Source of the DNA: Mustelus asterias
Lineage: Eukaryota
DNA length: 64,000 nucleotides
Direction of reading: 5' to 3'
Assembly (NCBI RefSeq): GCF_964213995.1
Contig: NC_135804.1
Span: 59,334,001 to 59,398,000 of the forward strand
Under the pieces are notes generated by a model, which worked only from the letters and a program-made list of their open reading frames with translations, was not told the origin of the DNA and did not search any database. The position numbers and the translations under genes were made by a program. Positions 13,943 through 64,000 of this stretch are shown here, piece by piece. Each line of letters opens with the position of its first letter. The first letter of the stretch is position 1.

Positions 13943-13994
13943 ATGATGAAAATGTTTTTTCTGTGCCTGATCCTCCAAGGGATTAATCACACAG
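13943..13994 (+). CDS. Gene A (VJ-C1 IgSF receptor) exon 1, leader MMKMFFLCLILQGINHT
   Basis: ATG, hydrophobic core and phase-1 donor ACAG|gtagca; splices in frame to the V exon at 14161. Confidence 0.8.
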
Positions 13995-14160
13995 GTAGCA
14001 ATTTATTCATTTCCCCAGTTGCTTTAATTGATAATTAGCTCCGAAGTATTTCTATGTCAATTTAGCGAACCTTATTTCCTCTGTCTAGATTATGTTTTGA
14101 GCCTTTCACTTTTATGTTGTATCCAATTCAATTGACGTGTGTTGTCTTAATTTCTGACAG

Positions 14161-14481
14161 CTGCGGACCACACTTCGTTCAGTGTGTCTCAAGCACCAGA
14201 AGAAACGACTGTATCCAGAGGAGAAAACATCACCTTCTACTGCATATTCCCCATTTTTCAATCCCAAGCCTGGATACGGGTGTTATGGTGGAAACATGGT
14301 GAGAATGAATTCCTGCATTCAAGCCCAGACAAGAGAAAAAGGTTTGGTATGAAAAGTAAAGTGAGCGGTTTCTTTCGCTTACTAAATGTGACAGTGCAAG
14401 ACTCTGGAATCTATCACTGTACGGTGATCTGTCAGGGAGTAGGTCGAGGAAATGGAACCGGATCACATCTAATTGTGCATG
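14161..14481 (+). CDS. Gene A exon 2, Ig V-set domain with in-exon J-like G strand
   Basis: ttctgacag| acceptor and G|gtaaat donor; 321 nt, phase 1-1; motifs NITFYC, VLWWK, DSGIYHC, GNGTGSHLIV. Confidence 0.92.
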
Positions 14482-15093
14482 GTAAATGTCAAATATACTT
14501 GTCAAATGTACACAGCATCTTTTGACTGTTTCACCGATCCATTTTTGTCAGTGTTAACATGATTAGTAACACAAGCAATAGTCCTCTCTCTATAGAATTG
14601 TTATTTAGACATGCAATGCCACGCGCAGAGTACTGCGAAATGAATCAATATTATTGAATTTGACAACAACTATGAAGGCAATGTATGCGCCAGCTGAATG
14701 ACCGTGGAAACTCACAGCAGTTTCCAAACATATAACTGAATGAAAATCATTTATAATAAAACGCATCATTCAATCAGTACATTGATCTTGCTCATTTGAG
14801 ACACGCACCATCCTGAACATCATTTATGTTAAAATTCATCTCCCAATAAGTACACCATTCTTGTTAACTTCAGATTCTTTTTCTGCCTCTATCCCTGTCC
14901 TGGCGACTTAATATTCCTGAAATCCTGAGATTTGGATGAGGTTCGTATACAATAGGTAGAAATTTAAAAAGTCAGGAGGCCGCGTTTTTGAATTGTACTA
15001 TTATAAGAAAATGAAACGAATGTATATCAGAATCAAACTTAATTTATCCAAATCGAGCACATTACTCGCCTTTGTTCATTCTGTGTTCCGCAG

Positions 15094-15405
15094 CGGCCCC
15101 AAACCCACTGAATCTTGTCTCCAGGGCATCTGAAGGGTATTTATCTGCGCCTTTGACTCTAGTCTGTGAAACGGCAGAGTTGTATCCGGAAAATTTCACC
15201 CTCACTTGGTATAAAAATGGACTCGAAACTACATTTGGAATACACGCCAGTAAAGTGCAAAACAGAGAGGGACTATATGAAGTTTCCAGCTCTTTGGTTG
15301 AAACGCAGCCTGTCCCGAGCGACGCCAATTATACGTGTTTGGTATCTCATGTCTCCCTCAAGACTCCGGCGGTTGTCATCTACACTCGTTCTAAATCTAG
15401 CCAAG
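15094..15405 (+). CDS. Gene A exon 3, Ig C1-set domain
   Basis: ccgcag| ... AAG|gtacga; 312 nt; LVCETAELYPENFTLTWYKNG ... YEVSSSL ... YTCLVSH (C1 signature YxCxVxH). Confidence 0.92.
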
Positions 15406-15654
15406 GTACGACGACAGGAATCCAAAAAGGGATTAAATAATTATTGAATTCGTAAAGGGATATAATGGACAGTTTGCACATAAAGATACTCATGGTAATA
15501 GTTCACGACATTTCATGGGAAATAGAAATGAAAATATTAGATTTAATTGAGTAATATACTTCAACCTAATGTTATGTTATAACATCAGCTGCACACATGT
15601 TCTCAGTTAAGCCTTATTGTTGATAATTGCCACTATTGTATGTATAACGTATAC

Positions 15655-15960
15655 TAGAACATACGAAATCGAAATCGGAGTTCATCATAGGGCCCGTCGA
15701 ATATGCGTGGCCATTCGATAAGATAATTACTGACTTTCTACATCAACTCTACTTTCCAGTCCGATCCCCTAACGATTGCAACTTTGTATATACTCACTGA
15801 CTCAGCATTCACAGCCTTCTGAGGTACTGAATTCCTAAGATTTGAAACTCTTGGATGAAGAATTCTCTCCTAACCGCAGCCTGAGATGACCAAACCCTTA
15901 TCTTGTGACTTTGATCCAAAGTACTAGACTTCCAGCCAGAGATAGCAGTTTGCTGATCTA
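15655..15960 (-). mobile_element. Old CR1 3' fragment in a gene A intron
   Basis: Minus-strand HKIRV...VRREFFIQ... and CR1-like 3' UTR. Confidence 0.55.
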
Positions 15961-16002
15961 ATTTATGGAAAGAAATAATTTTTTTCTCGTTCTGTATTAT
16001 AG

Positions 16003-16116
16003 TTCCTGGGAACACTATTAGATTAACCAATGAACTGTTCGTCAGCCTGTTTGCAAAACACTCGCCGCTACTCCTGATCATCACTAGGGCGCACTGCCAA
16101 ATACCGATTAAGAACG
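16003..16116 (+). CDS. Gene A exon 4, atypical TM-homologous exon VPGNTIRLTNELFVSLFAKHSPLLLIITRAHCQIPIKN
   Basis: Polypyrimidine tract plus tatag| acceptor and ACG|gtaagc donor; 114 nt, phase 1-1, open; shares atcatcact(a/g)gggcg with the gene B TM exon. Confidence 0.65.
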
Positions 16117-17606
16117 GTAAGCGTTTGATTTTAATACAAAACGTCAGATACCGAGCGTCGAGAGAGTGAGAGTTAGTACTACATGGAGAGAGGATTTTAT
16201 TGAAGTCGGAATATTCTGTTCAGAGCAAACCACTGATTTCCCCAAACAGTGACAAATTCTTCACGTCAAAACACGGTAATTATTGTAAAACCATACCACA
16301 AATGGATCTGATTAACTGTATATCTGTCACTGACATTTTTCGCTTTGCAGCAACTGCTGAATGAAATATATCGTTTCGCACAGTTTCCAACTAGTCTGTA
16401 GTGAGACTGCAGTTAGTTTGTGTGGAGCCTTGTATCGTTCAGACCTGAAATGGTTGCAGGTCATTGCTGCCCTGCACAGGAGTTGGCATTTCGGACAGTC
16501 GCGAAATCTGAATTGGAAAAACATGTTCTATTTTGGTACCTTCTCGAGTAAGGAGTTTGCAACAATTGACAATCGAACTAAGTGAGTACTTTAAAAAACC
16601 TCCTCATGACTAAATTTCAGTCATTCACGTGGCAAAAGCGTAAGGAGGACAGCAGCGCTGCCAAGAACCTGCACGTTCATTTGCGCATCTCCGGAAAGGT
16701 TTGAAATGAGAAAATAAGGATTGCATAATGAGCAATTTATTTATTGTTGGAAGTATTTGCCTCGCAAGAAATACTTAACACCGGGAGCTCGGGAATGAAA
16801 CTGTTTTTGCGAAAACAAAATCAGGCGTGGCGTTGATGGTTCGCTCTTGTCCCTTTCGCGAGATCGCAGAAGACCAATTTGTCCCCGCCATCCAGTGTTT
16901 ACTCTTCTAAATAGATACGGAGCAGAAAGCAAAACTGATGGTTTTGTTGAAATCTAAAGAGGTAATCATTTTTGTAGCTTTACCTATATTTGGAAAAAAA
17001 AGTTAGCGAATCTGTATTCAAGCGGAGCAGGAACTTTAAGGATTTCAGTAACTTGGTGTGGCGAGCGCTTTGATATTTTTAAATTTAAATTCTAATTATA
17101 AATTTTAATTATAATTACGACTTGCAATAACCGGTATTCAGATTTGCAGTTATTTGAAATTATTCAGCATGGCTTCTGTGCTTTATCTCTAGCCATTCTG
17201 CTTAATGTTTCACCAGTAGTATGTAAAATGATGCAGGGAAGTGAAATAGGCATATTAAAATATTTTTCCGGTCCATGTAAGAAACACAGGTTGAAATCGC
17301 CAACATGTTGCAGCACCTTTAAGTAGAACCATGTACACTCCAAAACTTATAATTGAATCGGAGAGGCCCGTGCAGTCTCAGGCGGTGCTGAGATCAGACC
17401 GACAGCGATTATCACAGGCCGATGTGTTACGATAATATTCCCGTGATAACGAATAATAAATACAAGGTTGGCTGTTTCCTGTCGTGTATTGCAGCTCCGG
17501 TTCTGTGCATTTTTTTCTTCCTCATGAATGCTTTGTGTAGAAGCCAATAAAACTGGAAAGAACACCAATTAATAATCTTTCCAAACATTAATTTTCAGAC
17601 TAAACA

Positions 17607-18807
17607 AGTTATCATCATGGATAAAGTCAATAAAATATATGTTATCAGAGCTTACTTATTTCAATCAAGCATTATTATTTTTCGTGCGTAAAATTGCAAA
17701 ACCTGGTTTTTGACCTGCGTGTTTCGTATTTTGACGTCTAGAGTTGATGTTTCTTTTGAAATGGAGTCTGCAATATATTTGCTGGCCCACAGAAGCCTCA
17801 GAACACAGGGGCCTTCGCGGGTTAGAACTGTCAAACTCCAAAAGAAAACAAATGAAGAAGATTAAATGTAACACGTGAGAAAAGAGTAACTTATGACATT
17901 ATTATGTAACTGAATATAAAATGTAAGTGTTTGCTTTTGCTTAACGGTTTGTGGAAATTTATTTGCTTTTGCTTAACGATTTGTGGAAATTTACTTGAAT
18001 TGCCTATAATAGTTATTTGATGTATTGGCATTGGAGGGAGTGCAGAGAAGGTTCACCAGGTTGATACCGGAGATGAGGGGTTTGGATTATGAGGAGAGGC
18101 TGAGGAGATTGGGTTTGTACTCGTTGGAGTTTAGAAGGATGAGGGGGGATCTTATGGAGACTTATAAGATAATGCGGGGGCTGGATAGGGTGGAGGCGGA
18201 GAGATTCTTTCCACTTAGTAAGGAAGTTAAAACTAGAGGACACAGCCTCAAAATAAAGGGGGGTCGGTTTAAGACAGAGTTGAGGAGGAACTTCTTCTCC
18301 CAGAGGGTGGTGAATCTCTGGAATTCTCTGCCCACTGAGGTGGTGGAGGCTACCTCGCTGAATATGTTTAAAGCGCGGATGGATGGATTCCTGATCGGTA
18401 AGGGAATTAAGGGTTATGGGGATCAGGCGGGTAAGTGGTACTGATCCACGTCAGATCAGCCATGATCTTATTGAATGGCGGGGCAGGCTCGAGGGGCTAG
18501 ATGGCCTTTTCCTGCTCCTATTTCTTATGTTCTTATGATTGCCTTGATTGCCTTGTGTAGTTTGACGAATCGGTGGCACTGAATGGATGAATACGCTGAC
18601 TGTTGAGTTATCATCATGTATAAGGTCAATAAAATATATGTTATTAGATCTTGCTTATTTCAATCAAGCATTATTAATTTTCGTGCGTAAAATTGCAAAA
18701 CCTGGTTTTTGATCTGCGTGTGTCGTATTTTGACGTCTAGAGTAGATGATTCTTTTGAAATGGACTCTGCAATATATTTGCTGGCCCACAGAAGCCTCAG
18801 AACACAG
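17607..18807 (+). repeat. 202-bp direct duplication (17607-17808 and 18606-18807)
   Basis: Direct comparison shows ~11 mismatches and no indels; the spacer holds a later CR1 3' insertion. Confidence 0.9.
18010..18537 (+). mobile_element. Young 5'-truncated CR1 3' fragment
   Basis: Intact ORF2 C-terminus 18025-18444, tcttatgt-repeat tail, attgcct target duplication. Confidence 0.93.
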
Positions 18808-23113: not shown

Positions 23114-23913
23114 CCATGTTTTGTGCAAACAAAAGTCCATTAGCTCTATCAAAGTAACTAATTCCTAGCTGAAATGCGTAATTAACTTGTTATTGCCAAC
23201 CTGAAGCTAAATGTTTACCAGGCACACCGACTGTCTGTAGAATAGAACTGAAATTTCAAACATTATATAGAAACACAAAAATTGAACATTATTTATATCT
23301 GGAGCTACTACCTAGTATCATGAGACCTTACCCTTAAATAAAAAAACAAGAATATGAAAAGATGGCTTCATTTTTCTAAAGCCTTTATTATTTTCACACT
23401 ATTCGTACTCTATCAGGTATACATCTTATGACATATAAGCATGCAAATTTAAACAGTATTATAGTCCAGTTCAGTCTTTCTTTTCCAACACGGAATATTC
23501 TATCCTTTTAGCAAATCATAGACGTGATAAAACATCTGCAATCACATTCTCTCTTCCTGTCATACCTGTAATGTTCAAATTAAATGTCTGTAACAATAAG
23601 CTCCACCTAAACAGTCTTGCACTTCCATCTTTAAACTTCTCCAGAAGCTTCAATATATTATGGTCAGTATAAATAATTATGTTTGATGAACTGCTGGCAA
23701 CATAAATATTAAAATGTTGCAATGCCAATGCAAAATTCAAGGCCTCCTTCTCCATGATCGAATATCTGTTTTGATGAACATTTCGCTGTTTGGAAAAATA
23801 ACCAACAGGTCTCTTCATCATTTCATGGTCTTCTTGTAACAGTACAGCACCAATACCCACATTACGTGCATCAATGACCACTTTGAATTGCATAATTCGG
23901 CGAGATGATTAAG

Positions 23914-28466: not shown

Positions 28467-28605
28467 AAACACAGTCAGAGTTTTAACAACACGAGGTTAA
28501 AGTCCAATAGGTTTATTTGGTATCAAATAATCCTGTTGGACTTTAACCTGGTATTGTTAAAACTCTTACTGTGTTTACCCCAGTCCAACGCCGGCATCTC
28601 CACAT
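28467..28605 (+). mobile_element. Penelope-like terminus with partial inversion, inserted in CR1
   Basis: 12-bp target duplication cacagaggaggt at 28455-28466 and 28606-28617. Confidence 0.85.
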
Positions 28606-29519
28606 CACAGAGGAGGTGCCAGAGAACTGGAGAACCTTGAATGTGGTTCTGCTATTTAAGAAGGATTGTAGAGGAAAGCCACGTAAGTACAGACCAGTGA
28701 GTCACAGGTCAATCATAGGGAAATTATTGGAGAAAATTCTGAATGAGAGCATCCATCTCTCATTTAGCGAAGCAAGTTCGATTAAGGATAGTCAGCATGG
28801 CTTTGTCAGAGGGAGGTCATGCCTACCAAAGTTGATCGAATTTTTTGAGGAGCTGACTAAGTTCACCTCCTCAAATGTAGTTTATATGTATTTCAGCAAA
28901 GCCTTTTTCCAGGTCCCACATGGGAGACTTATAAAGAAATTAAATGGAATACAGGATACATTGATAAAATGGATTCAAAATTGGCTCAATTGTAGGAGAC
29001 AGAGCATGATGACACTTGATGATGGCTGCGTTAGTGACTGGAAGCCAGAGTCCAGTGGTGAACTGTGCTGGGTCCCCTATTATTCATCATTTATATCAGC
29101 AGCATAGGTAACTGTGGGAGGTAGGATTAATAAGTTTGTGGATGGCACAAAAAATGGCCGGATACTTAACAGTGAGGTAGAGTGTCTTGGGCTGCAAGGA
29201 GACAGAGATGGGATAATCACATGGGTAGATATGTAGCAAATTGAATTTAACCCTGAAAAATGTGAGGTGATACACTTTGGAAGGAATAATTGGACAAGAA
29301 GTACTCAATGAATGGCATAACACTAGGGAGTTCTGTGAAACTAAGGGACCATGGGGTCTTTGTCCAGAGATCTCTGAAACCGCAAGCACATGTCGGTACA
29401 TTGCTGAAAAAGTAATTGGGACACTTGCATTTATCAATCGAGGCGGAGCTTACAAAAGCAGGGAAGTCATGTTGGAGTTGTATATAACTTTAGTGAGGCC
29501 ATAGCAAGAGTGCTGTGTG

Positions 29520-30356
29520 GTGAAGAAGGCATTCAGCATGCTTGGTTTCATCGGTCAGAACATTGAATACAGGAGTTGGGACGTCTTGTTGAAGTTATAC
29601 AAGACATCGGTAAGGCCACACTTGGAATACTGTGTGCAATTCTGGTCATAGAAAGGATATTATTAAACTAGAAAGAGTGCAGAAAAGATTTACTAGGATG
29701 CTATCATTTTCTATTTTTTGGGGCGTTTAAGAGATCCGTAGATAGGTTCATGGACGAAAAGAAATTGGTTTAGGTTGGAGGGTCACAGTTTTTTTTTTTT
29801 TTAACTGGTCGGTGCAACATCGTGGGCCGAAGGGCCTGTTCTGCGCTGTAATGTTCTATGTTCTATGTTCTATGTTCTATCGGGACTTGATGGATTGAGT
29901 TATAAGGAGAGGCTGAATAGACTGGGACTTTTTTCTCTGGAGCGTAGGAGGCTGAGGGGTGACCTTATAGAGGTCTATAAAATAATGAGGGGCATAGACA
30001 AGGTAGATAGTCAATATACCTTCCCAAAGGTAGGGGAGTCTAAAACTAGAGGGCCTAGGTTTAAGGTGAGAGGGGAGAGATACAAAAGTGTCCAGAGGGG
30101 CAAAGTTTTCACACATAGGGTGGTGAGTGTCTGGAATAAGCTGCCAGAGGTAGTAGTGGAGGCAGGTACAATTTTATCCTTTAAAAAGCATTTAGATAGT
30201 TACATGGGTACGATGGGTATAGAGGGATGTGGGCCAAATGCGGGCAATTGGGATTAGCTTAGGGGTTTCAAAAAAAAAGGGCAGCATGGACAAGTTGGGC
30301 CGAAGGGCCTGTTTCCATGCTGTAAACCTCTATGACTCTATGACTATGACTCTATG
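29520..30356 (+). mobile_element. CR1 3' fragment nested in CR1, itself containing a further CR1 3' tail at 29706-29876
   Basis: Interrupts the host xCVxFW motif; gactctat-repeat tail; inner piece has ctatc duplication and gttctat-repeat tail. Confidence 0.85.
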
Positions 30357-31166
30357 AATTCTGGTCGCCACATTCTTGGAAGGCTGTAGTTGCTTTGGAG
30401 TGGGTGCAAAGGAGATTCACCAGGGTGCTACCTGGGATGGAACTTTTAAGTTATGAAGAAAGGTTGGATAGACGTGGATTGTTTTTGTTGGAGCAGAGAA
30501 GACTGGACGGGGGAGAGGGGTGCACCTGATCGAGGTGTGTACGATTATGAGGGGCATAGTCAGAGTGGATAAGGAGCAGCTCTTCCCCTTAGTTGAAGGG
30601 TTAGTTATGAGGGAGCACAAATTCAAGGCGAGGGACAGGAGGTTTATGGGGGACGTGAGGAAAATCCTTTTACCCAGAGTGCGGTGACGGTTTGGAATGC
30701 ACTGCCTGGTAGCGTGGCAGAGGCGGGTTGCCTCATAAAATGGCCTGGATGAGCACTTGGAACGCCATGACATTCAAGGCTACGGGTCAAGTGCTGATAA
30801 ATGGGATTAGATGGGAAGTCAGGTATTTCGCACGTGTTGTTGCAGACTCGATGGACCGAAGGGCATCTTCTACGCTGTATGATTCGATGTTATCGCGTCA
30901 AGGGGGTGGGTAAAAACGCAAGCTGATGTTGTAAATCATCCTTTTTGAAACTCAGTTTTTTTTAACCCTCATTTTTAGTTGATCGTGCTGCAGGTGATTC
31001 CAAAAGCTGCCGGACGGTCACAAACGAAACGTATTTTTGAACAAGCGTAAAACAGGATGTCAAACGTCATTGCGATGGTTTTCAGATCAAATGTTCAGCA
31101 GACAATTCACACAGTGATAAACACACGGTCACTGCAGTCAGACATCAACTGAACCTTTATCACAGA

Positions 31167-31227
31167 ATGTTGTCCAATCTGATTCTTCTGTTAACGTCCC
31201 TGTCTCTCCTGAAGATCATTTCAACAG
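31167..31227 (+). CDS. Gene B exon 1, leader MLSNLILLLTSLSLLKIIST
   Basis: ATG, Leu-rich core and phase-1 donor ACAG|gtattg. Confidence 0.85.
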
Positions 31228-31420
31228 GTATTGGGATATTATCTACCCCAACTGTCTTATTAAAGAAATAAATATTTCATTGTTCCCAAGTCGATAGAAT
31301 TAAAGGCAGTTCGTCCTTCAAAACCTCTTCTGCATTTCCATGCAGAAACATGTTCTAAGATCTCTCCTTTCGCATTGAATACAGTTAATTAATACAAACT
31401 TTAAATATACTTTCTAACAG

Positions 31421-31741
31421 GTGCTCCAGGAACTTCGATCAGAGTGTCTCAAAGTCCTAAACAGGTAACTATATTGAGGGGGACAAACATCACCTTCTAC
31501 TGCATAATCCCCCTTTCTCATGACAATGTGGATGTCGAGGTGCTTTGGTGGAAACAGGGTGAGAATAAATATATGACAAAAGGAACCGATGACAGAAAAC
31601 GATTCGATTTCAAAATTAAAGGAGGTGGTTTATTTGAGCTGCGAAACGCGACTCTCCAGGACTCAGGAATCTATCACTGCGCAGTGATCCGTCAGGGAAA
31701 AAATAGTGGAAATGGAACAGGATCAAATTTAATTGTCTGCG
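31421..31741 (+). CDS. Gene B exon 2, Ig V-set domain with J-like G strand
   Basis: ctaacag| ... G|gtaagt; 321 nt; NITFYC, VLWWKQ, DSGIYHC, GNGTGSNLIVC. Confidence 0.93.
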
Positions 31742-32346
31742 GTAAGTGACTGAAATGGCCGGGAATATCAAGCACGCTGTTTTGCCATTGTTTTATTGTG
31801 CTGCCTTTGATATTGTAAAGCTCTGTGCACAACTGCCAATTACGCAGCGGAATGTGACATTTTATTTGCTGTGTTATTCCAAACTGCTGGAAATACTCAG
31901 CAATTCAGGGCATGTCTGCGAAGAGAGAGGCAAAGTTAAAGTCTCAGGTCCATCAACTTTTTGAGTAAAGTGTTACCTGATTCACCTCAAAATATAATTT
32001 TTAGATCAGATTTCTTAGTCCGAGGCTGGCCCACGTAGTCTCGATTCCCCAGCCAGAGGAAACAACCTCGCCGAATCTATCCTGTCAAGCACATTTACAA
32101 TCTTGAATGTTCCAATGACATCACTTCATTCTAACTTTTTCATTCTTCGCCTGTATGAGCTTCCATAAATCTATATAACCTTGCTTTTATTACCGGTGTC
32201 GGACAGATTGTTTTTCTCTTGCGGACGCTGTTGACTGATCTATTCTTACTAACATAAAGGGAAGCGAATGAGGATATAATTCGTCTCTCATTCCTTACTC
32301 TGAACATTTCTCCACCAACCTGACTTTCCCCATGTTCTGTTCGCAG

Positions 32347-32658
32347 CTACACCAACTCCGTTAAAGATTTTCGCTAAGCATCCCGCAAGGAATTCAACTA
32401 CGTTCCTGACTCTTGTGTGTCAGACGGCTGGATTTTACCCGGGTGATTTGACCCTCCTTTGGTATAAAAATGGCGTCAACATCACAACGGTGGGAAATCC
32501 GATCAAACGGCAGAACGCAGAAGGACTGTATGAAGTTTCCAGCTCTTTTGAAGAGCCGCACTTTGTGCGGAACGAAGCTGTTTACATCTGTTTGGTAACT
32601 CACATCTCCCTCCGGACTCCTGCCATTGCCATTCACACTGTTACCAACTCCTGCTCAG
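32347..32658 (+). CDS. Gene B exon 3, Ig C1-set domain
   Basis: tcgcag| ... CAG|gtatgt; 312 nt; LVCQTAGFYPGDLTLLWYKNG ... YICLVTH; ends NSCS with an extra Cys. Confidence 0.93.
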
Positions 32659-33965: not shown

Positions 33966-34076
33966 ATTCTGATGGTGGATATCATTACCTCTGGATTTCT
34001 AGGTGTGTCATGGGTGGATTGGTGTTTCTGATGCTTATAATCATCACTGGGGCGAAATTGATTTCGAAGAATAAAG
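33966..34076 (+). CDS. Gene B exon 4, transmembrane DSDGGYHYLWISRCVMGGLVFLMLIIITGAKLISKNK
   Basis: tttcttgcag| ... AAG|gtaacc; 111 nt, phase 1-1; hydrophobic helix with Arg near its N-terminal end and basic residues after it. Confidence 0.88.
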
Positions 34077-38605: not shown

Positions 38606-38769
38606 AAACATAACTAGAAACTAGAAGCAGGAGCAGGCTTTCGACCCTTGAGCCTGCTTTGCCATTCATGATGATCATCAAATTCAATATCCTGATCCCA
38701 ACATTCCCCTATATTCCTTGATCTCTTTAGCCCCAAGGGCTATATCTAATTTATTCCTGAAATTACATC

Positions 38770-45326: not shown

Positions 45327-45328
45327 GA

Positions 45329-48300
45329 TATCTTCGAGGGAGCATTGAATAAAGGTTTGTGGGTAGAACTTAGGAATAAAAAATAAAGTCATATTTCTAG
45401 CTGTTTTTTATGAACACCCAGATAGTCAGTTGGAAATTGAGGGGCTAAAATGAGCTCAATATGCAAAGGTGAGTAAAAATAATAACAAAAAGGTAATTAT
45501 AGTAGGTGATATCAACTTTCCCAACATTAACTGGGATAAACATAGCGTAAAGAGTTTGACTGGAGTGGATTTCTTGAAATGTGTAGAGGAGAACCTGAGG
45601 CCAATACGTAGAGCGTCCAACAAGGGAAGGAGCTTTGCTGGGCCCAATTCTGGAGAATGAAGCCGAACAGGTGTTTGAGGTGGTGGATGGGTGGGGGATG
45701 GTGGGGGTGGTGAGGGTTGGGGGGGGGGGGGGGGCGGGGGGCGGGGGCGGGGCGGGATCATTTCAGTGATAGTGACCATAACATGGTACAATTTACTCTT
45801 GATATGGACAAAGAATCATACAACTTGCAAAAAATGTTTTTGGTTTGGGGGAGAGAGCAGAGTTTAATGAAATGAGGCAGAATCTTGCCAAGGTAGAAAA
45901 GGAACAGCTACTATTAGGGAAATCTACAGAAGTGCAATGGGGCGTTCAATAAAGAAATGGGAGGGGGAGGTGGTACAAGCCGAACACGTTCATTCTAGGG
46001 TGTTAAGAAAGAATAGCAACCCAAAGAACCATCGATGACCAGATATATTCAGGACAAGATGCTAAGGAAAATAAAAGCTTTTAGCAGATACAAGGCGACC
46101 AAATCAGCAGAGGCATTAGTGAAGTACAGAACGTGCAGGGCAGACTGTAAGTAAGCAATTAGAAAAGTTAAAAAGGGATATGTGAGAGCTGTGGCTTGTA
46201 AAAGTAGGGAAAATCCCTACATATTCTCTAAATATATCAATGGGAAGAGGTTAACCAGGCGAAGAGTAGGGTCCATTCTGGAGCAAGGGGCCAATGTATG
46301 CGTGGAGCAAGAGGATATTGGCAGAGTGTTCAACCGATACTTCACATCTGTTTTCACCAAGAGAATTGGGATGAAGATATGGAGCACAGAGGGAGAGGCT
46401 GTGAGGTTCTTGAGCAAATTGACATAGGGAAAAACAAGGTACTGGAGGAATTGGCAGGCTTGAATGGGGACAAATCGCCAGGTCCAGATGAATTGTGCCC
46501 CAGGCATCCGTGGCAGGCAGGAGAGGAGGCTTCCGAGGTTCTGCCCCAATTTTGAGTTCCTCTCTGGCCACGGAGGAAGTGCCAGAGAACTGGAGAAGAA
46601 TGAATGTGGTTCAAAGGGTTGTAGAGGTAGGCCACGTAAGCACAGACCAGTGGGTCATAGGTCAGTCATAGGGAAACTGCTGGAGAAAATTCTGAAGGAG
46701 AGCATCTATCTCTCCTTTAGAGAGGCAAGGCTTGATTACAGATAGTCAGCATGGCTTTGTCAGAGGGAGGTCATGCCTACCAAAGCTGATTGACTTTTTT
46801 GAGGAGGTGATTAAGTTCTAGAGTGCAGTTGATGTAGTTTATTTTTATTTAAGCAAAGCGTTTGACAAAGTCCCACATGGGAGACTTATAAAGAAATTAA
46901 ATGGAATACAGGGTACATTGATAAAATGAATTCAAAATTGGCTCAATTTAAGAGGCCGAGTGTGGTGACAGAAGGCTGCTTTAATGACTGGAAGCCAGTG
47001 TCCAGTGGCGTATCACAGGTCCCCTACTATTCACCATTTATATAAACAACATAGATGACTATGTGGGGGGTAAGATTAATAAGTTTGTGCATAACACAGA
47101 CATTGGCCTGATGCTTGACAGTGAGGTAGAGTGTCTTGTGCTATAGGGAGATGTAGATGGGATACTCAATGAGCAGATATGTAGCAGATGGAATTTAACC
47201 CTGAAAAGTGTGAGGTGATACACTTTGGAAAGAATAATTGGACAAGAAGTACTCAATGAATGGCACGACACTAGGAAGTTCTGTAAAACAAAAGGACCAT
47301 GGGGTGTTTGTCCAGAGATCTCGGAAACTGGAAGCACATGTTCATAGAGTGTTGAAAAAGTCATATCAGACACTTGCATTTATCAATCGAGGCATACATC
47401 ACAAAAGCAAGGAAGTGATGTTGGAGTTGTATAGAATTTTAGTGAGGCCACAGCTGGACTACTGTGTGCAGTTCTGGTCGCCACATTCTTGGAAGGCTGT
47501 GATTTATCTGGAGAGGGTGCAGAGGAGATTCACCAGTCTGCTGCCTGGGATGGAACATTTAAGTTATGAAGAGAGGTTGGACCAGAGGAGACTGGGCGGG
47601 GGAGGGGGAAGGGGGTGCACCTGATCGAGTTGTATGAGTTTAAGAGGGGCATAGACAGAATGGATAAGGAGCAGCTCTTCCCCTCAGTTGAAGGGTTAAT
47701 CATGAGGGAGCACAAATTCAAGGGGAGGGACAGGAGGTTTATGGGGGATGTGAGGAGAAACCTTTTTATCCGGAGTGTAGGGACGGTTTAGACTGCGCTG
47801 TCTGGTAGCAGGGTAGAGGTGAGTTGCCTCACAACCTTTAAAAAGTACCTGGATGAGCACTTGGAACGTCATGACGTTCAAGGCTATGGGCCAAGTGCTG
47901 ATAAATGGGATTAGGAGAGAGGTCAGGTGTTTCATATGTGTTGGTGCAGACTCGATGGGCCGAACGGCATCTTCTGCGCTGTATGATTCTATGTTATTGC
48001 GTCAAGGGGGCGGCGGGGAGAAGGGGGGGGGGGCGGGGTGCTGGCGGGTGGATATAAAAACAAGCTGATGTTGTAAATGTTCCTTCTTGAAACTCCGTTT
48101 TTTAAACCCTTATTTTTAGTTGATCGTGCTGCAGGTGCGGTCACAGACGAAACGTATTTTTGAACAAACAGGTACAGGGTGTCAAACGTCATTGCGATGG
48201 TTTTCAGATCAAATATTCAGCAGACAATTCACACAGTGATAAACACACGGTCACTGCAGTCAGACATCAACTGAACCTTTATCACGGAATGTTGTCGAAT

Positions 48301-49820
48301 GTGATCCTTCTGTTCACGTTCCTGTCTCTCCCGAAGGTCATTTCAGCGAGTATTGGGATATTCTCTACCCAAACTGTCTCATTAAACAAGCAAATATTTT
48401 ATTGTTCCCACGTCAATTGAATTAAAAGTCGTTCGTCCGTCCGTCAAAATCTCCGGTCTCTGTCTTCCAGACAGAAACATATTCCAAAGTCTCTCCTTTC
48501 ACACTGAATACTGTTACTTAATACAAACCTTCAATATATTTTCTAACAAGTGCTCCGGGAGCTTCGATCAACGCGTCTCAAAGTCCTAAACAGATAACTA
48601 TATTGAGAGGGACAAACATCACTTTCTATTGCAGAATTCCCCTTTCTCATGACAATGTGGATGTCGAGGTGCGTTACTGGAAACAGGGTGAGAATAAATA
48701 TATGACAAATGGAACCGATGACAGAAAACGATTCGATTTCAAAACTAAAGGAGGTGATTTATTTGAGCTGCGAAACGCGACTCTCCAGGACTCAGGAATC
48801 TATGACTGCGCAGTGTTCCGCCAGGGGGAAAATAGTGGAAATGGAACAGGATCCAGCTTAACTGTCTGCGGTAAATGACTGGAATGACCAAGAACATCAA
48901 GCACTCGATTTTATCACTGTTTCATTGTGCTGCCTTTGATGCTGTAAAGCTCTGTGCTCAGCTGCTAATTAGGCAGCGGAATGTGACATCTTATTTGCTG
49001 TGTTATTCAAAACTGCTGGAAATACACAGCCATTCAGGGCATGTCTACGAAGAGAGACGCAAAGTTACAGTCTCAGATCTGTTACCTTTTTGAGTAAAAT
49101 GTTACTTGATTCATTACAAAATGTAATTTTTACATCAGATTTCTCATCTTGAGGTTGGTCCACCGTATTCTAGATTCCCCAGCCGGAGGAAGCAACCTCG
49201 CCGAGTCTACCCTGCCAGGTACATTTACAATCATGTATGTTCCACTGAAATCATCTCATTCTAACCTTTTCACTCTTCGCCTGTATGAGCTTCCATAAAT
49301 CTATATAACCTTGCTTTTATTACCGGTGTCGGACAGATTGTTTTTCACTTGGGGACGCTGCTGACTGACCTATTTTTACCAACATAAAGGGAAGCGAATG
49401 GGGATATAATTCTTCTGTCATTCCTTACTCTGAACGTCTCTCCACTAACCTGATTTTCTCCATATTTTGTTCGCAGCTGCACCAACTCCGTTAAAGCTTT
49501 CCCTAAGCATCCTGCAAGCAATTCATCTACGTTCCTGACTCGTGTGTGTCAGACGCCTGGGTTTTACCCGAGTGATTTGACTCTCCTTTGGTATAATGAT
49601 GGTGTCAACATCACAACGGTGGTTAATCCGATCAAGCAGCAGAACAGTGAACGACTGTATGAAGTTTCCAGCTCTTTAGAGGAGCCGCAATCTGTGCAGA
49701 ACGAAACTGTTTACATCTGTTTGGTAACTCAGATCTCCCTCCGGCCTTCGGCCATTGCCACTCACATTGTTACCAACTCCTGCCCAGGTATGAGGCCAAT
49801 AGGCCAATAAGTGAAATTAG
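45329..49820 (+). repeat. Segmental duplication copy 2 (CR1 45329-47992 plus gene C ectodomain exons)
   Basis: Same CR1 copy without the nested insertions at 28467 and 29520; promoter and intron sequence nearly identical to gene B. Confidence 0.9.
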
Positions 49821-52817
49821 TAGTTTTTTTTAAATCAGAAAAGGGTCTTTCTTGGAAATTATTGACCTCAATTATCATGAAGATAATTTTAAAATAAAAT
49901 ATCGGTAAATATAAAATGAAAGAGAAGATTGAATGGTTCTGTGTGAAGTTTTATTGGCCCAAACTTGTTGTCAAAGCGAAGTAGTATCATTGTTGTCCTC
50001 CTGCCTTTTGAAGCTCGGCAGGTTCCAATTTTTTCAAAAGACAAAGTTGCAAGCGGCCGAAACGTTCCATCTATTTATTTTACTTATAATGCTTATTATT
50101 AAACATTCGCATTTGGCCACTTCTCATACTGATTTTATATTTTCCAGGACCAGTTTTCCTCACACCGGCTGCAGAACCAGGAGTGGCAGTTTGTTTGGTT
50201 TGCCCCACTGTGAATGGGTCCAAAGTTAGTCTTGTGGGCAGGTCGCAATGCCTCTTCATGACCCAGCGGTTAGGAGCAAAAACGCCCTTTTGAAGTATTT
50301 CATTTTGCTTGCAGCCCAGATCTGCAGTATAACTTATTGCGATTCATAGGTTAATTAATTAACATGTTCTGTTATTAGCAAATAACCATGCATTGCTTTC
50401 CCTTCCTACTGCTTCTTACTTCAGTTAACATACTCCACAACATTGAATTTGCACATTAAGGGACTGAATAAAGTCCATATTTCTCATAGCAGTGGCACGT
50501 TTCGTTTCATTGAATTACTAATATTTTATTAAATAATAGTGTAAAAGAAAAATATAAGTCAAATGCAAGAACAAGCCTATTGATCCATCGAAATGTTCTC
50601 GAAGGGAATTTTCATCGCGCCCCAAATTGGTACTCTCCCTCGCAGGTAATTCTGGTGTTGTGCTATCCTTTGTGAGAATGAATTATTTTGACATCAATCT
50701 AATATGGTAAATTGCGAATACTTTGAAGTAATGCTCTCCTCCGAAACATATCACCCAGTTGCAGAAAACATGAGCACTAGTTTAACCAACAAATTAATTC
50801 GAGGTAAAAGCAAATTACTGCGAATGCTGGAATCTGAAACAAAAACAGAAAATACTGGGAAATCTTAGCAGGTCTGACAGCTTCTGTACTGAGAGAATAT
50901 TAATTCGAGGTTTCTTTTTAGGTAGCGTCCGAAATAAATTCTCAGCATCATTTTAATTTTGCAGAGCCTGATGGTAAATATCATTACATTTGGATTTCTG
51001 GATGTACGGTGGGTGGATTGGCTTTTCTGATATTCATGGTCATAATTGGGACGAGAGTCTGTCTGAAGAATACAGGTAGGTACCCCTTTATGCAAATCTT
51101 CAGGGGAACGGAGAGATTGTGCTCGGCGGCGTTGTGAGCATAAGGATTGCGCAATTGTCACTTATTGGATGCAAGAAAAACCGAAATCGTGAGCGGCAAA
51201 TGGGACTGATTTTATAACGTAGTCGTTGTCTCAAAATTAGGATTTAATGAATCTGATTATTTGTACATTACATTTGGTAATGCCCGCATTCTGGCAGATG
51301 GTAAATCCTGTCAGTGTCCAGATGGAGAAGATTTATAATTCACTTAAAATGTGAAAATCTGGCATTGGCAAAATATGACAAATCTGAGGACTGGCACAAA
51401 ATATCAAGTAACTGATTAATGTCCTTTAGAGACGGAAACAGATTCAACGCGGTCTGAACTATGTGTGACTCCAGTCCGACAGAAGTATGGTCAATTCTTA
51501 AATAGCCTCTGAAGTGGCCACGCAAGCCACTTAGTCATATCTGGCTAACGACAGCCGGAGGTGGACAACAAGTATGCTCGTCTGCGGCACCGACGTCTTG
51601 AGAATGAATGAAGCAAGATAGCAGTTTGACTTTTTCGACATGGTTAATATTCTCACATAGTTCCATAAACAACATGGTCGAGCCGCCGCTTTACAGGCTA
51701 AAGGAACAAATTTATTCCGAGTTTCTACCTGATGCATTACCCCGATAATGAATAATCACTCCGTATCTCTTTGAACGAACGTTTGGGTTTTATCATTAAT
51801 GATCAAAATTGTATTCCGTTGTGCGGTGGACTAGAACACCCCACAGTTCGATTGTTCCCTTGTATGACGCACTGCCTTGTCCATGTAGTTTAACATCCAA
51901 CATTAAACCATTGTTAATTTGTATGAAATGGACATTTTATGTGCTCGGCCAACCAAATACTTGGTCGTTTTCAGTTTCATCATTAGTAATATCACTAGAA
52001 TCCAGAGAGCTTTTTTTTTCTCATCTCCGCTGTGGCCTGCGTCCGTGTGTGTTTCTGCGCGTGTTTCTGTGAGTGTCTGTGTTTGCGTAATTGTGTGCGT
52101 GCGTTTTTATCCAAGTGTGTGTTAAACATTATCTAGCCTCTAAAAATACTTTTGAAGGCACAACTATGGAAAGTGATCGTTACAGATCGTAACCATTGAA
52201 AGAAATTCATTTGCTTATTTTCCAGGTAAACAGGAAAGTGCAACAATAGTGAACATTGGTGACGAGCGGGTGGGTTATTTTTTATATAAATGTTGTTACT
52301 TCGTCGCGGTCCTGCTTAGCCACGTTATGAAGGCACTTCCCTTGGCCAACAAGTCCCGGTGTGGAGTTCAAAGCGGGAATTTCTGGTGCAGCCAAAAGAG
52401 TCTCTTTGTATGGTAGCACCTTTCAACAGTCATGCCGTCACACAGCAAGGCATGTGCTCCTCTGCCCGACTTCGAATCTAACTATTTAAGATTCTTCAGT
52501 TTCTCCCCTAATTATGAACATCTTCAAACTTTTTTTACTTTCTACATTTACATTTTTTAAATTTTCTACATGGACTTAACCGTCCAAACTACAATGACTA
52601 TCAGTATTCCGCTGCAGGGTTTCACATTCGCCACACTCTCCTACCTATTACATAATAGCTTCAAAACTGAATGCTAATCCCTGAATTCTGATGAATCAAT
52701 GACTCACATGCCTCATAAAGTGGAACAGCACCAAATTAGGCTGTGCAACACGAGTCATAAAGTATTTTAATTCTAGAAGCTTGCTTTTATAATGTGCTTT
52801 CTTTTCTACCTTACCGT

Positions 52818-59473: not shown

Positions 59474-59528
59474 ATGGCATCGAGGACTGTGCTTCAGAGT
59501 GCACAGGTCATCTGGATTATCTTGACTG
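59474..59528 (+). CDS. Gene D exon 1, leader MASRTVLQSAQVIWIILT
   Basis: aaaATGG context; phase-1 donor CTG|gtattt; 99-nt intron to V. Confidence 0.75.
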
Positions 59529-59627
59529 GTATTTACTATCGTTCACTCCTTGTCTTTACGTCTGTGTCTCGCTCTCGCTCTGTCTTTTTTTTAATAAGTA
59601 AAACGAATGTTCATTTTTTTTTCATAG

Positions 59628-59945
59628 TTGCTGCCAATCCTCTGATTGAAGTGACCCAGGTCCCTGAAAATATCTATTCGATAATCGGGACTAATATTGC
59701 ATTTGACTGCACGTTTCCTACTTCTCAAGACGATTTAGATGTGAACATTCATTGGTGGAAACTTGGCGAAAAGGATTTGATGCGGCCAGGATCAGATAGC
59801 AGGAAATGGTTTGCCACTGGGAATGGAAGAGCTTCCTTTAAACTCCTGAATATCAGTATTCAGGACTCTGGAGTCTATTACTGCGGAGTGACACTTCAGG
59901 GAAACTGGTTCACAAATGGAAGTGGATCAACGCTCGTCGTCAGTG
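59628..59945 (+). CDS. Gene D exon 2, Ig V-set domain with J-like G strand
   Basis: tttttcatag| ... G|gtaaga; 318 nt; VTQVP, AFDC, IHWWK, DSGVYYC, TNGSGSTLVVS. Confidence 0.93.
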
Positions 59946-61688: not shown

Positions 61689-62000
61689 CTCTCCCAACTC
61701 CCGTGACGATTGTTCCCAGCGCATCTGCAAGCAATGTACCCGGTTCTTTGACGCTCGTGTGCGAGATGGCTTCATTTTACCCGGCGGGTCTAACTATCAT
61801 TTGGTACAAAAATAACGGAAGCATTGAGAATGGAATTCACACCACCAAACAACTCAGCAGAACTGGAATGTATGAAGCTTCCAGCTATTTCGAAGAGGCA
61901 CAGCCTGTCCAGGGAGGGACTGTTTATGTCTGCCTAGTTTCTGATGCCGCTCTCCAGATTCCGGCTATGGCAAGTTACATAGTTCCCAATTGTAAACCAG
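61689..62000 (+). CDS. Gene D exon 3, Ig C1-set domain
   Basis: cgccag| ... CAG|gtatga; 312 nt; LVCEMASFYPAGLTIIWYKN ... YVCLVSD (His to Asp in the C1 motif); ends PNCKP. Confidence 0.9.
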
Positions 62001-62561
62001 GTATGATATTAGTTTTTATAGAAAAAAATGACAAGGCAAAAAATTCGAACGTTATTGAAAGTGAGCGAACTGTATATTTCACCGTAGTGACGGCGGTGGC
62101 AATAAAATGCAAAATACATTTGTAAGATAAGGTCAATATTTAAAGTAGTGAAATGTATTCTTTGTTTCCACGGCCTTTACTTTTCCATTTTGAGACCGAC
62201 CAGCTCCTCGGAGTAGCAACAACTTTTTAAATGCAGGAAACTTCCATCTATGGTCGGGAGTGAAAAAGCGGTTTCGGTTGGGCCAAATACCAGCCAAATG
62301 ATTTGGAATTTAAATGGTGTGTTGGCACCGTGGGTAAAGTTTTACACTTACATTTTGTGGAGAAAAATAACATGCCTACTCTTACCTGGAGAGAAATCCT
62401 TAACATCGAGAAGTCATGATACAACTCCACATAATGCCAAGGGGAATTAATACTTGAATTACCGAATTTAGTAAAACAAAAATATTAATATTTTATTGCA
62501 GCGATAGTAACCGAGTGTGAAAAAAATACCGGGACTAAGTATCGGTGAGGCGATAGTTAAA

Positions 62562-62690
62562 AATAATTTTCCCATTCCGCCCACCATGGGAATCGTAGCC
62601 GGCGAGGGGCGGACCATGGGAAGGTCCGTTAACCTCGGCCGCGATTTTCCGTTTTCGGGGCGAGCACAGCCGGAAAATCGTCGCCCCCTG
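62562..62690. mobile_element. Short GC-rich MITE-like repeat in a gene D intron
   Basis: attttcc...ggaaaatcgtcgccc inverted ends resembling the 44765 element. Confidence 0.4.
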
Positions 62691-62924
62691 AAATTCGTCT
62701 TGAGCGACAGCGCAAATTGGACGACAACTAGTCATTGCAGTTTTTGCACCTCTCCTGATAACCTTTGTTCTTTGTTTGTTCTTTGTTTGTTCTTTTAGTT
62801 TTCTACAGGTTAAATGGTGCGATGTGTCACTTCCCCATCCTAACATGCATCGTTTAGTTTCAAATAGCGGGAAATGAATTTTCACCAAAAAATATTCTGA
62901 TTCCCCAGTATGAACAATTCGGCA

Positions 62925-63264
62925 ATTTTCGGCAAAGCAGCCAGCATAATTAAAGACCCCTCGCACCCCGGACATTCTCTCTTCCAGCTTTTTCCATTGG
63001 GAAAAAGATAAAAATATCTGAGGTCACGTACCATCCGACTCAAGAGCAGCTTCTTCCCTGCTGCCGTCAGACTTTTGAATGGACCTAGTTTGCATTAAGT
63101 TGATCTTTCTCTACATCCTGGCTATGACTGTAACACTACATTCGGCATTCTCTCGTTTCCTTCTCTATGAACGGTATGCTTTGTCTGGATAGCGTGCACG
63201 AAATAATACTTTTCACTGTATGCTAATACATGTGACAATAATAAATCAAATCAAATCAAATAAA
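62925..63264 (+). mobile_element. Rex1-clade LINE 3' fragment
   Basis: Reverse-complement match to 42493-42835; aaatc-repeat tail; ends ~90 nt before the gene D TM exon. Confidence 0.88.
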
Positions 63265-63351
63265 ATTCTTCAATATCGGGATCTCTTTGCGGTTGTAACT
63301 GCAGATGACACATCCACAGCTCCAAGTTTGGAAGTTTTGTCTATCTTTCAG

Positions 63352-63462
63352 GTCGCGACAGTACCTCGTCCTCATCTTATTTACAGATTTTTGGGTGCGC
63401 AGGCTTCACAATGATGGTTTTGCTGCTGCTGATCATCATGAGAATGCTGGGCAACTATAAAG
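63352..63462 (+). CDS. Gene D exon 4, transmembrane GRDSTSSSYLQIFGCAGFTMMVLLLLIIMRMLGNYK
   Basis: tctttcag| ... AAG|gtagga; 111 nt as in genes B and C; uncharged hydrophobic core with the conserved Cys. Confidence 0.85.
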
Positions 63463-63964
63463 GTAGGATATCGTATTAGAACGTAATTAAAATATAAATC
63501 AGAAATAACAGGCAGCAGCCAGTAAGCAGCAAAAGACGATTGATCCACTATGAACTCAATTTTCCACTGGCACTGGAAGCTTTCAGTTGGTTGTTGGGTT
63601 TTTAAATTTGTCTGCGATATTGATTCGAGTATTTATTTCAGATTGGTATGCGTTTAAATATAGATTGTGTTTTCAGAACGCAACCTCCCAACACATCCCA
63701 ATTCAAAAATGTCCTCTCTGACACACTCCGAGAATAATTTATCCAATATTGTTTCCCCATCATTTAGGCAGAGATTTCTTTTTTAAAAATGTAGTGAATA
63801 GCTTTGCATTAGCATTTGCCATCCAGCATCCCTCGCGCAGACACAGGTAGCGGAGTTTAATGATGCTTTCTTGTCTTATCCTCACGGAAATTATCAGTTT
63901 ATTTGCTGAATCATATTATGCATCATTGACAATGACGTTTTGGATTTTGCGCTTTAGCACGCAG

Positions 63965-64000
63965 ACAGAGAACAGATGAAGCAAACAGCCGTGACAAATC
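63965..64000 (+). CDS. Gene D first cytoplasmic exon, truncated by the window end (DREQMKQTAVTN...)
   Basis: acgcag| acceptor, open in phase 1; positional counterpart of gene C 52226-52269 (GKQESATIVNIGDER). Confidence 0.5.

Follow-up and report, generated by a model that had tools for sequence, protein, structure and literature searches.

Four co-oriented germline-joined V(J)-C1 membrane genes in the shark Mustelus asterias, probably part of a paired-receptor family of cartilaginous fish

Four tandem genes in the window

The window, the whole 64,000-nucleotide stretch of chromosomal DNA from the smooth-hound shark Mustelus asterias that was analysed, carries four co-oriented genes (A, B, C and D) on the + strand, and all features described below lie on that strand. 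Each gene is built from leader, V, C1 and transmembrane (TM) exons. A sequence-only reading of this DNA had proposed four such paralogs; four V and C1 exon pairs were indeed recovered, with exactly the exon sizes it had given (V 318-321, C1 311-312 and TM 111-114 nt), and every intron of genes A-D was found in phase 1, as it had claimed. AG/GT dinucleotides are present at all exon borders except the V acceptor of gene C, which reads AA. Only B and D of the four copies look fully intact within the window; gene A has an odd membrane anchor and gene C is a pseudogene.

The leader exon of gene A (52 nt, 13943-13994) contains an ATG, a hydrophobic run and a GT donor in phase 1, and was weakly matched by tblastn to the leader of the homologue P0007. 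It is followed by a V(J) exon (321 nt, 14161-14481) with AG/GT borders and an open frame (Pfam V-set, E 6.7e-9), 86% identical to that of the same-species paralogue P0012, and by a C1 exon (312 nt, 15094-15405; Pfam C1-set, E 4e-10). The next exon (114 nt, 16003-16116) is TM-like, with a polypyrimidine/AG acceptor, a GTAAGC donor and phase 1 on both sides. Its hydrophobic run is broken by Lys-His-Ser-Pro, leaving it weakly hydrophobic and under the hydrophobicity cut-offs used, and it resembles the P0008 TM exon weakly (E 5.2). A relic of a cytoplasmic ITIM exon was placed at 17304-17420 by a weak tblastn match to the P0008 tail (E 0.09-0.36, 36% identity over 39 aa), in which all three tyrosines are replaced. 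Gene A may be a copy from an inhibitory lineage with a decayed ITIM exon and a central Lys in its TM exon; it would then be a newly activating form, a decoy form or a dying gene.

Gene B matches the RefSeq model P0001 of Mustelus asterias, named "SIRP-alpha-like", at 100%. Its leader exon (61 nt, 31167-31227) agrees at 100% with P0001 residues 1-21 and is followed by the V(J) exon (321 nt, 31421-31741) and a C1 exon (312 nt, 32347-32658), again at 100% to P0001, that ends in NSCS and so contains a membrane-proximal Cys. In the TM exon (111 nt, 33966-34076), the outer end of the membrane span carries an Arg (AGG). The last coding piece (34804-34823), six residues and a stop, was placed from the P0001 C-terminus and has an AG acceptor; the tail comprises 11 residues. 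An 899-nt contig from the public run X1, taken as RNA by guess, joins 31100-31222, 31416-31740 and 32346-32658 with GT..AG ends, confirming the leader donor, both borders of the V(J) exon and the C1 acceptor. The contig ends at the C1 end, and its splice support covers only the leader, V and C1 exons of gene B. Run X1 showed zero depth in repeat-free intron bins of this gene, and no gene B splice joints were found in three DNA-like runs. The contig differs from the window at 21/761 positions (about 3%) and may derive from an allele of gene B, from a close paralogue or from a sister species. The sequence-only reading had staked itself on at least one member being spliced, and this contig links the leader, V and C1 of gene B. 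Gene B appears to be an intact, transcribed member of a short-tailed, Arg-TM type that is putatively activating.

Gene C is a pseudogene twin of gene B: its V acceptor has mutated from AG to AA and its C1 exon (311 nt, 49477-49787) has a 1-nt deletion near the 5' end, followed by in-frame stops. The leader exon (61 nt, 48289-48349) precedes a V exon (321 nt, 48550-48870) with 86% amino acid identity to that of B, and the TM exon (111 nt, 50965-51075) encodes Gly (GGA) at the position of the gene B Arg. Gene D consists of a leader exon placed by prediction only (67 nt, 59474-59540), a V(J) exon (318 nt, 59628-59945; Pfam V-set, E 2.4e-7), a C1 exon (312 nt, 61689-62000) that is 78% identical to P0196 of Scyliorhinus torazame and bears a membrane-proximal Cys (NCKP), and a TM exon (111 nt, 63352-63462) whose span lacks a basic residue. 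Gene D falls in a third lineage, which is divergent and has an uncharged TM. Tail type could be read within the window for gene B only, the tail of A having decayed and that of D lying beyond the window.

Domain identity and the J-like strand

All four V exons match the Pfam V-set (E 1.7e-9 to 2.4e-7), and the three readable C1 exons (A, B and D) match the Pfam C1-set (E 2e-12 to 4e-10) with 40-48 bits against a cut-off of 21. The motif Y-x-C-x-V-x-H is intact in A and B; D has Asp, and pseudogene C has Gln, in place of its hallmark His. When a profile of three C1 sequences was compared with solved structures, the best single domain was the Ig lambda constant domain (38.5 bits); CH1 and UrIg2 domains scored 22-24 bits against the same profile, and no SIRP chain was among the best 60 chains. 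With the gene B C1 alone as query, SIRP-gamma domain 2 was the best of three alignments shown (25.5 bits). Neither SIRP V domains nor NKp30 appeared when the V exon was compared with solved chains and the best 60 were inspected, and NKp30 was likewise absent from the best 60 for the FG region of that exon.

The V exon had been said to carry a J-like G strand already, and an ungapped alignment pairs its motif NG-x-G-S-x-L-x-V with FGxGTxLxV, the J region of a TCR alpha chain. Among family members with a readable motif, the strand starts mostly with Asn, or with another residue, and never with the J Phe; no junctional length variation suggestive of a joining scar was seen at the G strand. The predicted absence of recombination signal sequences (RSS) also held: a search of the whole 64-kb window for heptamer-12/23-nonamer arrangements with up to 3 mismatches gave 0 matches per spacer, where about 0.8-0.9 would be expected by chance. 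The window genes do not have the layout of rearranging Ig or TCR genes: V and J share one exon, and the 64 kb contain no RSS-like match. These results support the claim that the V(J)-C1-TM genes of the window are joined in the germline, do not rearrange and belong to an expanded family.

Distribution, names and signalling tails of the family

A search with the gene B V exon returned 235 representatives at E<=1e-3, of which 79 reached E<=1e-10. Chondrichthyans accounted for 10/10, 16/16 and 52/54 of the named matches and for 23 of 30 individually looked-up proteins, the other seven being multi-V reptile proteins; the sequence searches behind this restriction to cartilaginous fish used a short domain that evolves fast. 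Members are present in the chimaera Callorhinchus, and chimaera, sharks and rays all share in a family that had already diversified. The V tree and the C1 tree agree on three lineages, one for A, one for B/C and one for D, each with orthologues from other orders of sharks, and rays join the A and B lineages in the V tree. The genes occur in several copies, four of them in 50 kb, with at least three RefSeq models on the same chromosome record.

Automatic annotation had been expected to produce SIRP-like, B7-H6-like or light-chain-like labels, and the RefSeq names of relatives include all three: SIRP-alpha-like, SIRP-beta-like, NCR3-ligand-1 (B7-H6)-like, lambda light-chain-like, tapasin-related, CD276 and PD-L1-like. 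SIRP-alpha-like or SIRP-beta-like is the commonest, and labels are inconsistent even inside single clades. Two C1 stretches were found in 3 of the 122 proteins with a C1 match, namely the skate protein P0039 and two others, P0046 and P0195, that look like fused models. Members without C1 also exist, with the arrangement V-TM-ITIM (for example P0016 and P0086), and at least one gene is spliced into forms that include C1 and forms that lack it (P0088, P0091).

Of the 92 family proteins whose TM could be detected, those with tails of <=25 residues carry a basic residue within or at the membrane span in 12/17 cases vs 8/49 for those with ITIM tails, a count that uses automatic gene models, some surely truncated, and ignores relatedness. 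In the long tails, tyrosines of the ITIM type alternate with others of the TxYAxx type; the window contains no intact ITIM exon. The combination of long tails with ITIMs and short tails usually accompanied by a basic TM residue points to a paired inhibitory/activating system, consistent with the innate-receptor role that had been proposed. We infer that long-tailed members with several ITIM-type motifs would recruit SH2 phosphatases and inhibit, and that short-tailed members with a basic TM residue would activate through a partner ITAM adaptor. In B, C and D, the membrane-proximal Cys could form disulfide-linked dimers. Taken together, the window is probably part of a large, tandemly duplicating family of germline V(J)-C1 type I paired receptors, chondrichthyan-only among named relatives.

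Relation to known receptor families

The window genes could be cartilaginous-fish co-orthologues of tetrapod SIRP, an ancient lineage with one C1 instead of two, although we consider this rather unlikely. SIRP is V + C1 + C1, and its forms comprise one with ITIMs, one with a basic TM that uses DAP12, and splice variants with D1 only (PMC12975943). Apart from domain number, the shark family matches these traits. Shared are a V with a J-like strand followed by a C1-set domain, type I membrane topology, an ITIM versus basic-TM short-tailed pair (seen at family level, with B as the short-tail/Arg type in the window) and splice forms without C domains, and SIRP is the usual RefSeq label of the shark genes. 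The two C1 domains of skate P0039 and the SIRP-gamma alignment of the gene B C1 point the same way. So do the alternating tyrosines of the long tails, which may resemble those of the SIRP-alpha tail. However, the SIRP ectodomain has one V-set domain with two of the C1-set type, and each window gene, like nearly all relatives, has a single C1, followed in the window genes by the TM. The V exon shows no special similarity to SIRP among its best 60 solved chains, the three-sequence C1 profile gives the Ig lambda constant domain a far higher score and has no SIRP chain in its best 60, and a 2026 survey places the SIRP family at Tetrapoda (PMC13262535). Another possible, if doubtful, reading is that the genes belong to the published shark NCR3 (NKp30) family and that only the species is new. 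NKp30 likewise has a germline-joined VJ-type V, and the window genes share its J-like G strand and lack of RSS; it is multigene in sharks, and the TM of human NKp30 bears an Arg at its outer end, like that of gene B. Kinlein et al. (2021, Immunogenetics 73:333) reportedly described a shark NCR3 family of eight divergent subtypes. V-TM members, and the gene spliced with and without C1, fit such a family, for which nurse shark accessions MT914154-MT914161 are available (PMC12227049). By contrast, tetrapod-form NKp30 is a single V without a C domain, and all four window genes have a C1 exon. In the accessible text of two papers from the same research circle, NKp30 is termed a "VJ" gene and UrIg the novel "VJ-C1" gene, and term counts in that text found no mention of ITIM or SIRP (PMC10751288, PMC12227049). 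No NCR3-named or nurse shark protein occurred among the 10 + 16 + 54 named matches or the 30 looked-up proteins; the absence of NKp30 from the best 60 solved chains argues in the same direction, but none of these points is decisive.

The resemblance to antigen receptors allows an improbable further reading, in which the genes are post-RAG derivatives and not pre-RAG relics: a rearranging IgL- or TCR-like gene became germline-joined, as occurs in shark Ig clusters, gained a TM and signalling tail, and multiplied. The window genes share the plan of Ig light and TCR chains, a leader with a single V(J) and a single C1, and B, C and D also share the membrane-proximal Cys; their best C1 match is the Ig lambda constant domain, well above CH1 and UrIg2, and their FG/J region is colinear with that of a rearranged TCR alpha chain. 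Set against this, they hold V and J in one exon, the J Phe is replaced by Asn and is never seen among family members with a readable motif, and neither junctional length variation nor RSS remnants were detected, the latter across the window. Family tails are ITIM-bearing or short, the TM lacks a TCR-type charge pattern, and the family was already diverse in chimaera, sharks and rays. Least credible is that the genes encode B7-H6-like or tapasin-like V-C1 ligands or chaperones instead of receptors. The names NCR3 ligand 1-like, CD276, PD-L1-like and tapasin-related suggest this, as does an NCR3LG1-named cluster among the top matches of an Atlas feature search (0.96), but such names vary even within single clades, and the J-like G strand, the multiple ITIMs and the dichotomy between charged TM and short tail on one side and long tails on the other are receptor signatures.

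With one C1 each and four copies in 50 kb, the window genes fall outside UrIg and UrIg2, which have VJ plus at least three C domains and are each known as a single gene per genome. The family shares with them a single-exon VJ, C1-type domains, occurrence in cartilaginous fish, the lack of rearrangement and a leader intron directly ahead of the V exon (PMC12227049). UrIg, however, has three C domains and is secreted, and UrIg2 has nine to eleven C domains (PMC12227049), in contrast to the shark family with its single C1, its tails that are short or carry ITIMs, and its numerous copies; its C1 profile scores UrIg2 C domains at only the 22-24 bits given above. A likeness in organisation is found in teleosts. 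Novel immune-type receptors (NITRs) form a large clustered teleost family of V(J)-bearing paired inhibitory and activating receptors, as the shark genes seem to do, but are not known to have the C1 domain that the window genes possess. NITR is listed among the joined-VJ genes (PMC11599192).

A bolder and less likely account, in line with the resemblance to a pre-RAG ancestor that the sequence-only reading had proposed, takes the germline V(J)-C1 paired receptors as an undescribed, chondrichthyan-wide family, the only known never-rearranging membrane receptors with exactly one V(J) and one C1, like TCR and light chains. They would then form a surviving offshoot of the pre-RAG antigen-receptor stock that underwent a KIR/LILR-like innate expansion in cartilaginous fish. 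On this account the C1 is closer to the Ig lambda constant domain than to any other solved domain, the Cys of some lineages could make disulfide-linked dimers, and the family would model the structure of the invaded ancestor better than the UrIg genes with their several C domains.

Anatomy and state of the four receptor genes

Four co-oriented genes of one plan, A, B, C and D, occupy the plus strand from 13.9 kb of the window, which is free of N bases. Each is built from leader (52, 61, 61 and 67 nt in A, B, C and D), V (321, 321, 321 and 318 nt), C1 (312, 312, 311 and 312 nt) and TM (114, 111, 111 and 111 nt) exons, with phase-1 introns throughout; borders were set from reading frames and AG/GT sites, and for gene B additionally from the RefSeq protein P0001. 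The exon sizes and phase-1 introns given by the sequence-only reading were matched in every measurable detail. Pfam assigned all four V exons to the V-set (E 1.7e-9 to 2.4e-7) and the three readable C1 exons to the C1-set (40-48 bits, the cut-off being 21). The Y-x-C-x-V-x-H motif is intact in A and B, and its His is replaced by Asp in D. A Cys lying 2-3 residues past the last C1 strand is present in B, C and D and absent from A; this stalk Cys was used for the window genes only, as the family-wide count (29 of 92) is inflated by a conserved Cys with which the TM begins.

The first 14 kb of the window and most of the intergenic space consist of LINE-type and other retroelement remains. LINE-type reverse transcriptase/endonuclease frames, decayed to differing degrees, lie before gene A (3900-6291, minus strand) and between the receptor genes (18025-18444, 28571-30257, 38718-41274 and 46298-47624, all plus strand). 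By eye, a 125-aa frame at 23516-23893 (minus strand) resembles the reverse transcriptase/RNase H junction of an LTR retroelement. At 45456-45791 (minus strand), a 111-aa proline-rich frame (a P run with S/T/Q) inside a G-rich stretch is probably low-complexity sequence and not a gene.

Every V exon terminates in NG-x-G-S-x-L-x-V immediately 5′ of the donor site. When the last 36 residues of the B V exon were searched against solved chains, the best full-length single-domain match was a rearranged TCR alpha chain, whose J-segment F-G-x-G-T-x-L-x-V pairs residue by residue with the strand of B, Asn replacing Phe. No heptamer-spacer-nonamer with three or fewer mismatches and either spacer was found in the whole 64 kb. 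Since chance expectation is below one, this zero count is by itself unremarkable; it does mean that nothing RSS-like lies 3′ of any V exon.

The sequence-only reading had treated the four genes as equivalents, a view that must be amended, as one of them (C) is dead and another (A) doubtful. Gene B is intact and corresponds at 100% identity to P0001 (274 aa, Mustelus asterias), which was returned by the C1 search. It is the only one of the four window genes matched to a RefSeq model, and the name of that model, ‘tyrosine-protein phosphatase non-receptor type substrate 1-like’, is misleading. The B TM exon opens with Arg (AGG), two residues ahead of the conserved Cys, and the tail comprises 11 residues, reached via a 20-nt last coding piece. 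Gene C arose recently as a copy of B (81.5% identity over 2.5 kb, introns included), with Gly (GGA) at the position of the B Arg; its V acceptor reads AA, and the loss of 1 nt near the start of C1 leads to stops. Gene D is the most divergent copy in the window: no relative exceeds 51% identity with its V, and a catshark protein matches its C1 at 78% identity. The D TM carries no charge, and the D tail falls past the window end.

In gene A the leader, V and C1 exons are intact, and the V is 86% identical to that of P0012, which RefSeq models with a long tail bearing ITIMs and which lies on the same chromosome record. The 114-nt exon of A, located by tblastn hints and a relaxed scan and falling below the hydrophobicity cut-offs in two scans, has good splice sites and carries Lys-His-Ser-Pro in the middle of its hydrophobic run. 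About 1.2 kb 3′ of this exon lies a relic of an ITIM exon (a weak match, E 0.09) in which all three tyrosines have been replaced; a scan of the window found no ITIM exon downstream of A, B, C or D. Gene A may be either an inhibitory gene becoming a charged-TM or decoy form, or else a dying gene.

A spliced contig matching gene B

No run recorded as RNA was found to contain the B stretch. In the public sequencing run X1, which is RNA by guess, an 899-nt contig of depth 64 spans 31100-31222, 31416-31740 and 32346-32658, and its two GT..AG joints coincide exactly with the predicted leader/V and V/C1 borders once the cut offsets are applied. Repeat-free intron bins have zero depth in X1, and three DNA-like runs span the introns without the X1 joints. 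In these two respects the joined form behaves as RNA would and not as a retrocopy would. The contig stops at the end of C1 and so covers no TM or tail exon. With 21 mismatches to the window over 761 positions, it may derive from an allele, a sister species or a closely related paralogue; the 12 listed codon differences comprise 5 silent and 7 residue-changing substitutions and no stops. Two further runs, X4 and X5, whose word share had hinted at RNA, cover introns and were set aside as DNA-like.

Within the B intron between C1 and TM, positions 33005-33258 are a very high-copy repeat, with a summed contig depth in the DNA-like run X2 of ~5,000-15,000 versus ~50 in the flanks. Numerous contigs join or end there, and likewise at ~31881-31909. 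The repeat at 33005-33258 is probably a SINE- or MITE-like element.

A cartilaginous-fish family with putatively paired signalling tails

A search of 1.84 billion representatives with the B V exon returned 235 proteins with E<=1e-3, of which 79 had E<=1e-10. Nearly all single-V matches are 220-400 aa long with V, C1, TM and tail, and every V-C1 protein that could be named comes from a cartilaginous fish. In three protein searches cartilaginous fish accounted for 10/10, 16/16 and 52/54 of the named matches, the remaining two of the 54 (from the search with a 41-row family profile) being one weak teleost match and one unnamed fragment. Of 30 proteins looked up individually, 23 belong to cartilaginous fish; the other seven, which were picked for looking different, are multi-V, ITIM-tailed reptile proteins. 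Family members occur in Callorhinchus, rays, a skate and sharks of several orders, which we take to number at least five. Within each species the listed members share one chromosome-size record. Their RefSeq names range over SIRP-alpha-like, SIRP-beta-like, tapasin-related, NCR3-ligand-1-like, lambda light-chain-like, CD276, PD-L1-like, MHC class II beta-like and uncharacterised, a jumble that is the look of an unnamed family. An Atlas feature search with P0002, the catshark orthologue of B, returned generic V-C1 clusters only.

In long-tailed members the tail holds between one and four ITIM-type motifs, which often alternate with T-x-Y-A-x-[IL] motifs. Among 92 family proteins with a placeable TM, counted from automatic models and ignoring relatedness, a basic residue in or at the TM span was present in 12 of 17 whose tail does not exceed 25 residues, in 8 of 49 ITIM-tailed proteins and in 6 of 26 whose long tail lacks a motif; this association of a short tail with a basic TM residue is an indication, not a test. 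Both kinds are found within the lineage of B: P0002 has the same Arg and short tail as B, and in the horn shark protein P0004 the residue is Gly and the tail holds two ITIMs.

A quick tree of 119 V domains was made by maximum likelihood; it is unrooted and short on columns for its number of rows. It groups A with horn shark, sevengill, catshark and ray proteins (clade of 14, SH-aLRT 96), B and C with proteins of catshark, horn shark, bamboo shark and devil ray (clade of 8, SH-aLRT 98), and D with P0078 (clade of 12, SH-aLRT 93). A C1 tree of 103 domains, likewise unrooted and with few columns, recovered the same partners with support of 87-91 and no starred clade, so that V and C1 have travelled together. 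On these trees the three window lineages are old, and two of them, judged from the V tree, older than the shark/ray split.

Outside the window, a conserved sister lineage (P0062, P0169-P0180, P0060 and P0173, the last from M. asterias and on the same chromosome record) is represented among the retrieved models by a single gene in each species, chimaera to rays. Its members combine V-C1-TM with a tail that is rich in Lys, Arg and Cys and lacks ITIMs. The branching of this lineage broadly tracks species groups, and its F-G region may resemble that of NKp30. The nearest V relatives outside the cartilaginous fish are multi-V, ITIM-tailed turtle, lizard and viper proteins (P0145, P0157, P0158 and others). 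Three multi-V proteins, one of them a lizard protein by look-up, adjoin a shark/ray subgroup in the V tree (SH-aLRT 94, not starred), several members of which are V-TM without C1. In Heterodontus francisci, P0088, P0165, P0166 and P0091 derive from one gene whose isoforms, with and without C1, share the same V, TM and ITIM tail. The C1-less isoforms parallel the D1-only splice forms reported for SIRP in PMC12975943.

Relation to known receptors

In comparisons with solved structures, whole-chain ranking is dominated by multi-domain chains and antibodies, and the comparison was restricted to per-domain scores from the few alignments shown. In these, the C1 of B alone scored 25.5 bits with SIRP-gamma d2, 20.3 with UrIg2 C1 and 18.6 with Ig lambda C. 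A profile of the A, B and D C1 domains scored 38.5 bits with the Ig lambda constant domain and 22-24 with CH1 and UrIg2 domains; no SIRP chain was among its best 60 solved chains. The best single-domain matches to the V were weak (23-28 bits) and comprised an amphioxus VJ-C2 protein, shark antigen-receptor V domains, PD-L1 and TCR V-alpha. NKp30 and the SIRP V were absent from the best 60 solved chains for the V exon, as was NKp30 from the best 60 with the lineage-N profile. The word-indexed protein searches, including that with the 41-row family profile, returned no named NKp30, SIRP, IgL or TCR. These domain scores suggest an ectodomain that is antigen-receptor-like in a general way, and the tails point to a signalling logic like that of SIRP, KIR or LILR. 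The window genes differ from SIRP in domain number, and from NKp30, at least in its tetrapod form, in having a C1.

We file the family as germline VJ-type paired immunoreceptors. The proposal made from the sequence alone is upheld as to kind: the genes belong to an expanded family of innate receptors that are shaped like antigen receptors, do not rearrange and bear inconsistent automatic names. The placement of this family near the pre-RAG ancestor goes beyond the evidence of this analysis. There is a substantial chance that the family has already been described under the NCR3 name, and a real chance that it is undescribed and of interest for how antigen receptors arose. In the accessible portions of PMC12227049 and PMC10751288, NKp30 is called a ‘VJ’ gene, UrIg is presented as a novel shark ‘VJ-C1’ gene, and the words ITIM and SIRP are never used, wording that leans, indirectly, against a description already existing. 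Among the open papers searched, none described a shark V-C1-TM-ITIM family.

Should the family prove to be the published shark NCR3 family (Kinlein 2021), the window would be an ordinary, partly decayed piece of it, and the main use of this work would be a clean annotation of four genes. From chimaeras to rays, a membrane-bound family has the exact single-chain plan of antigen-receptor chains, and, with its recognisable on/off signalling tails, lacks a consistent database name. If it is not the published family, it would be a large, testable candidate for the paired receptors, NK-like or myeloid, of cartilaginous fish, and a new outgroup for trees of antigen-receptor V and C1 domains.
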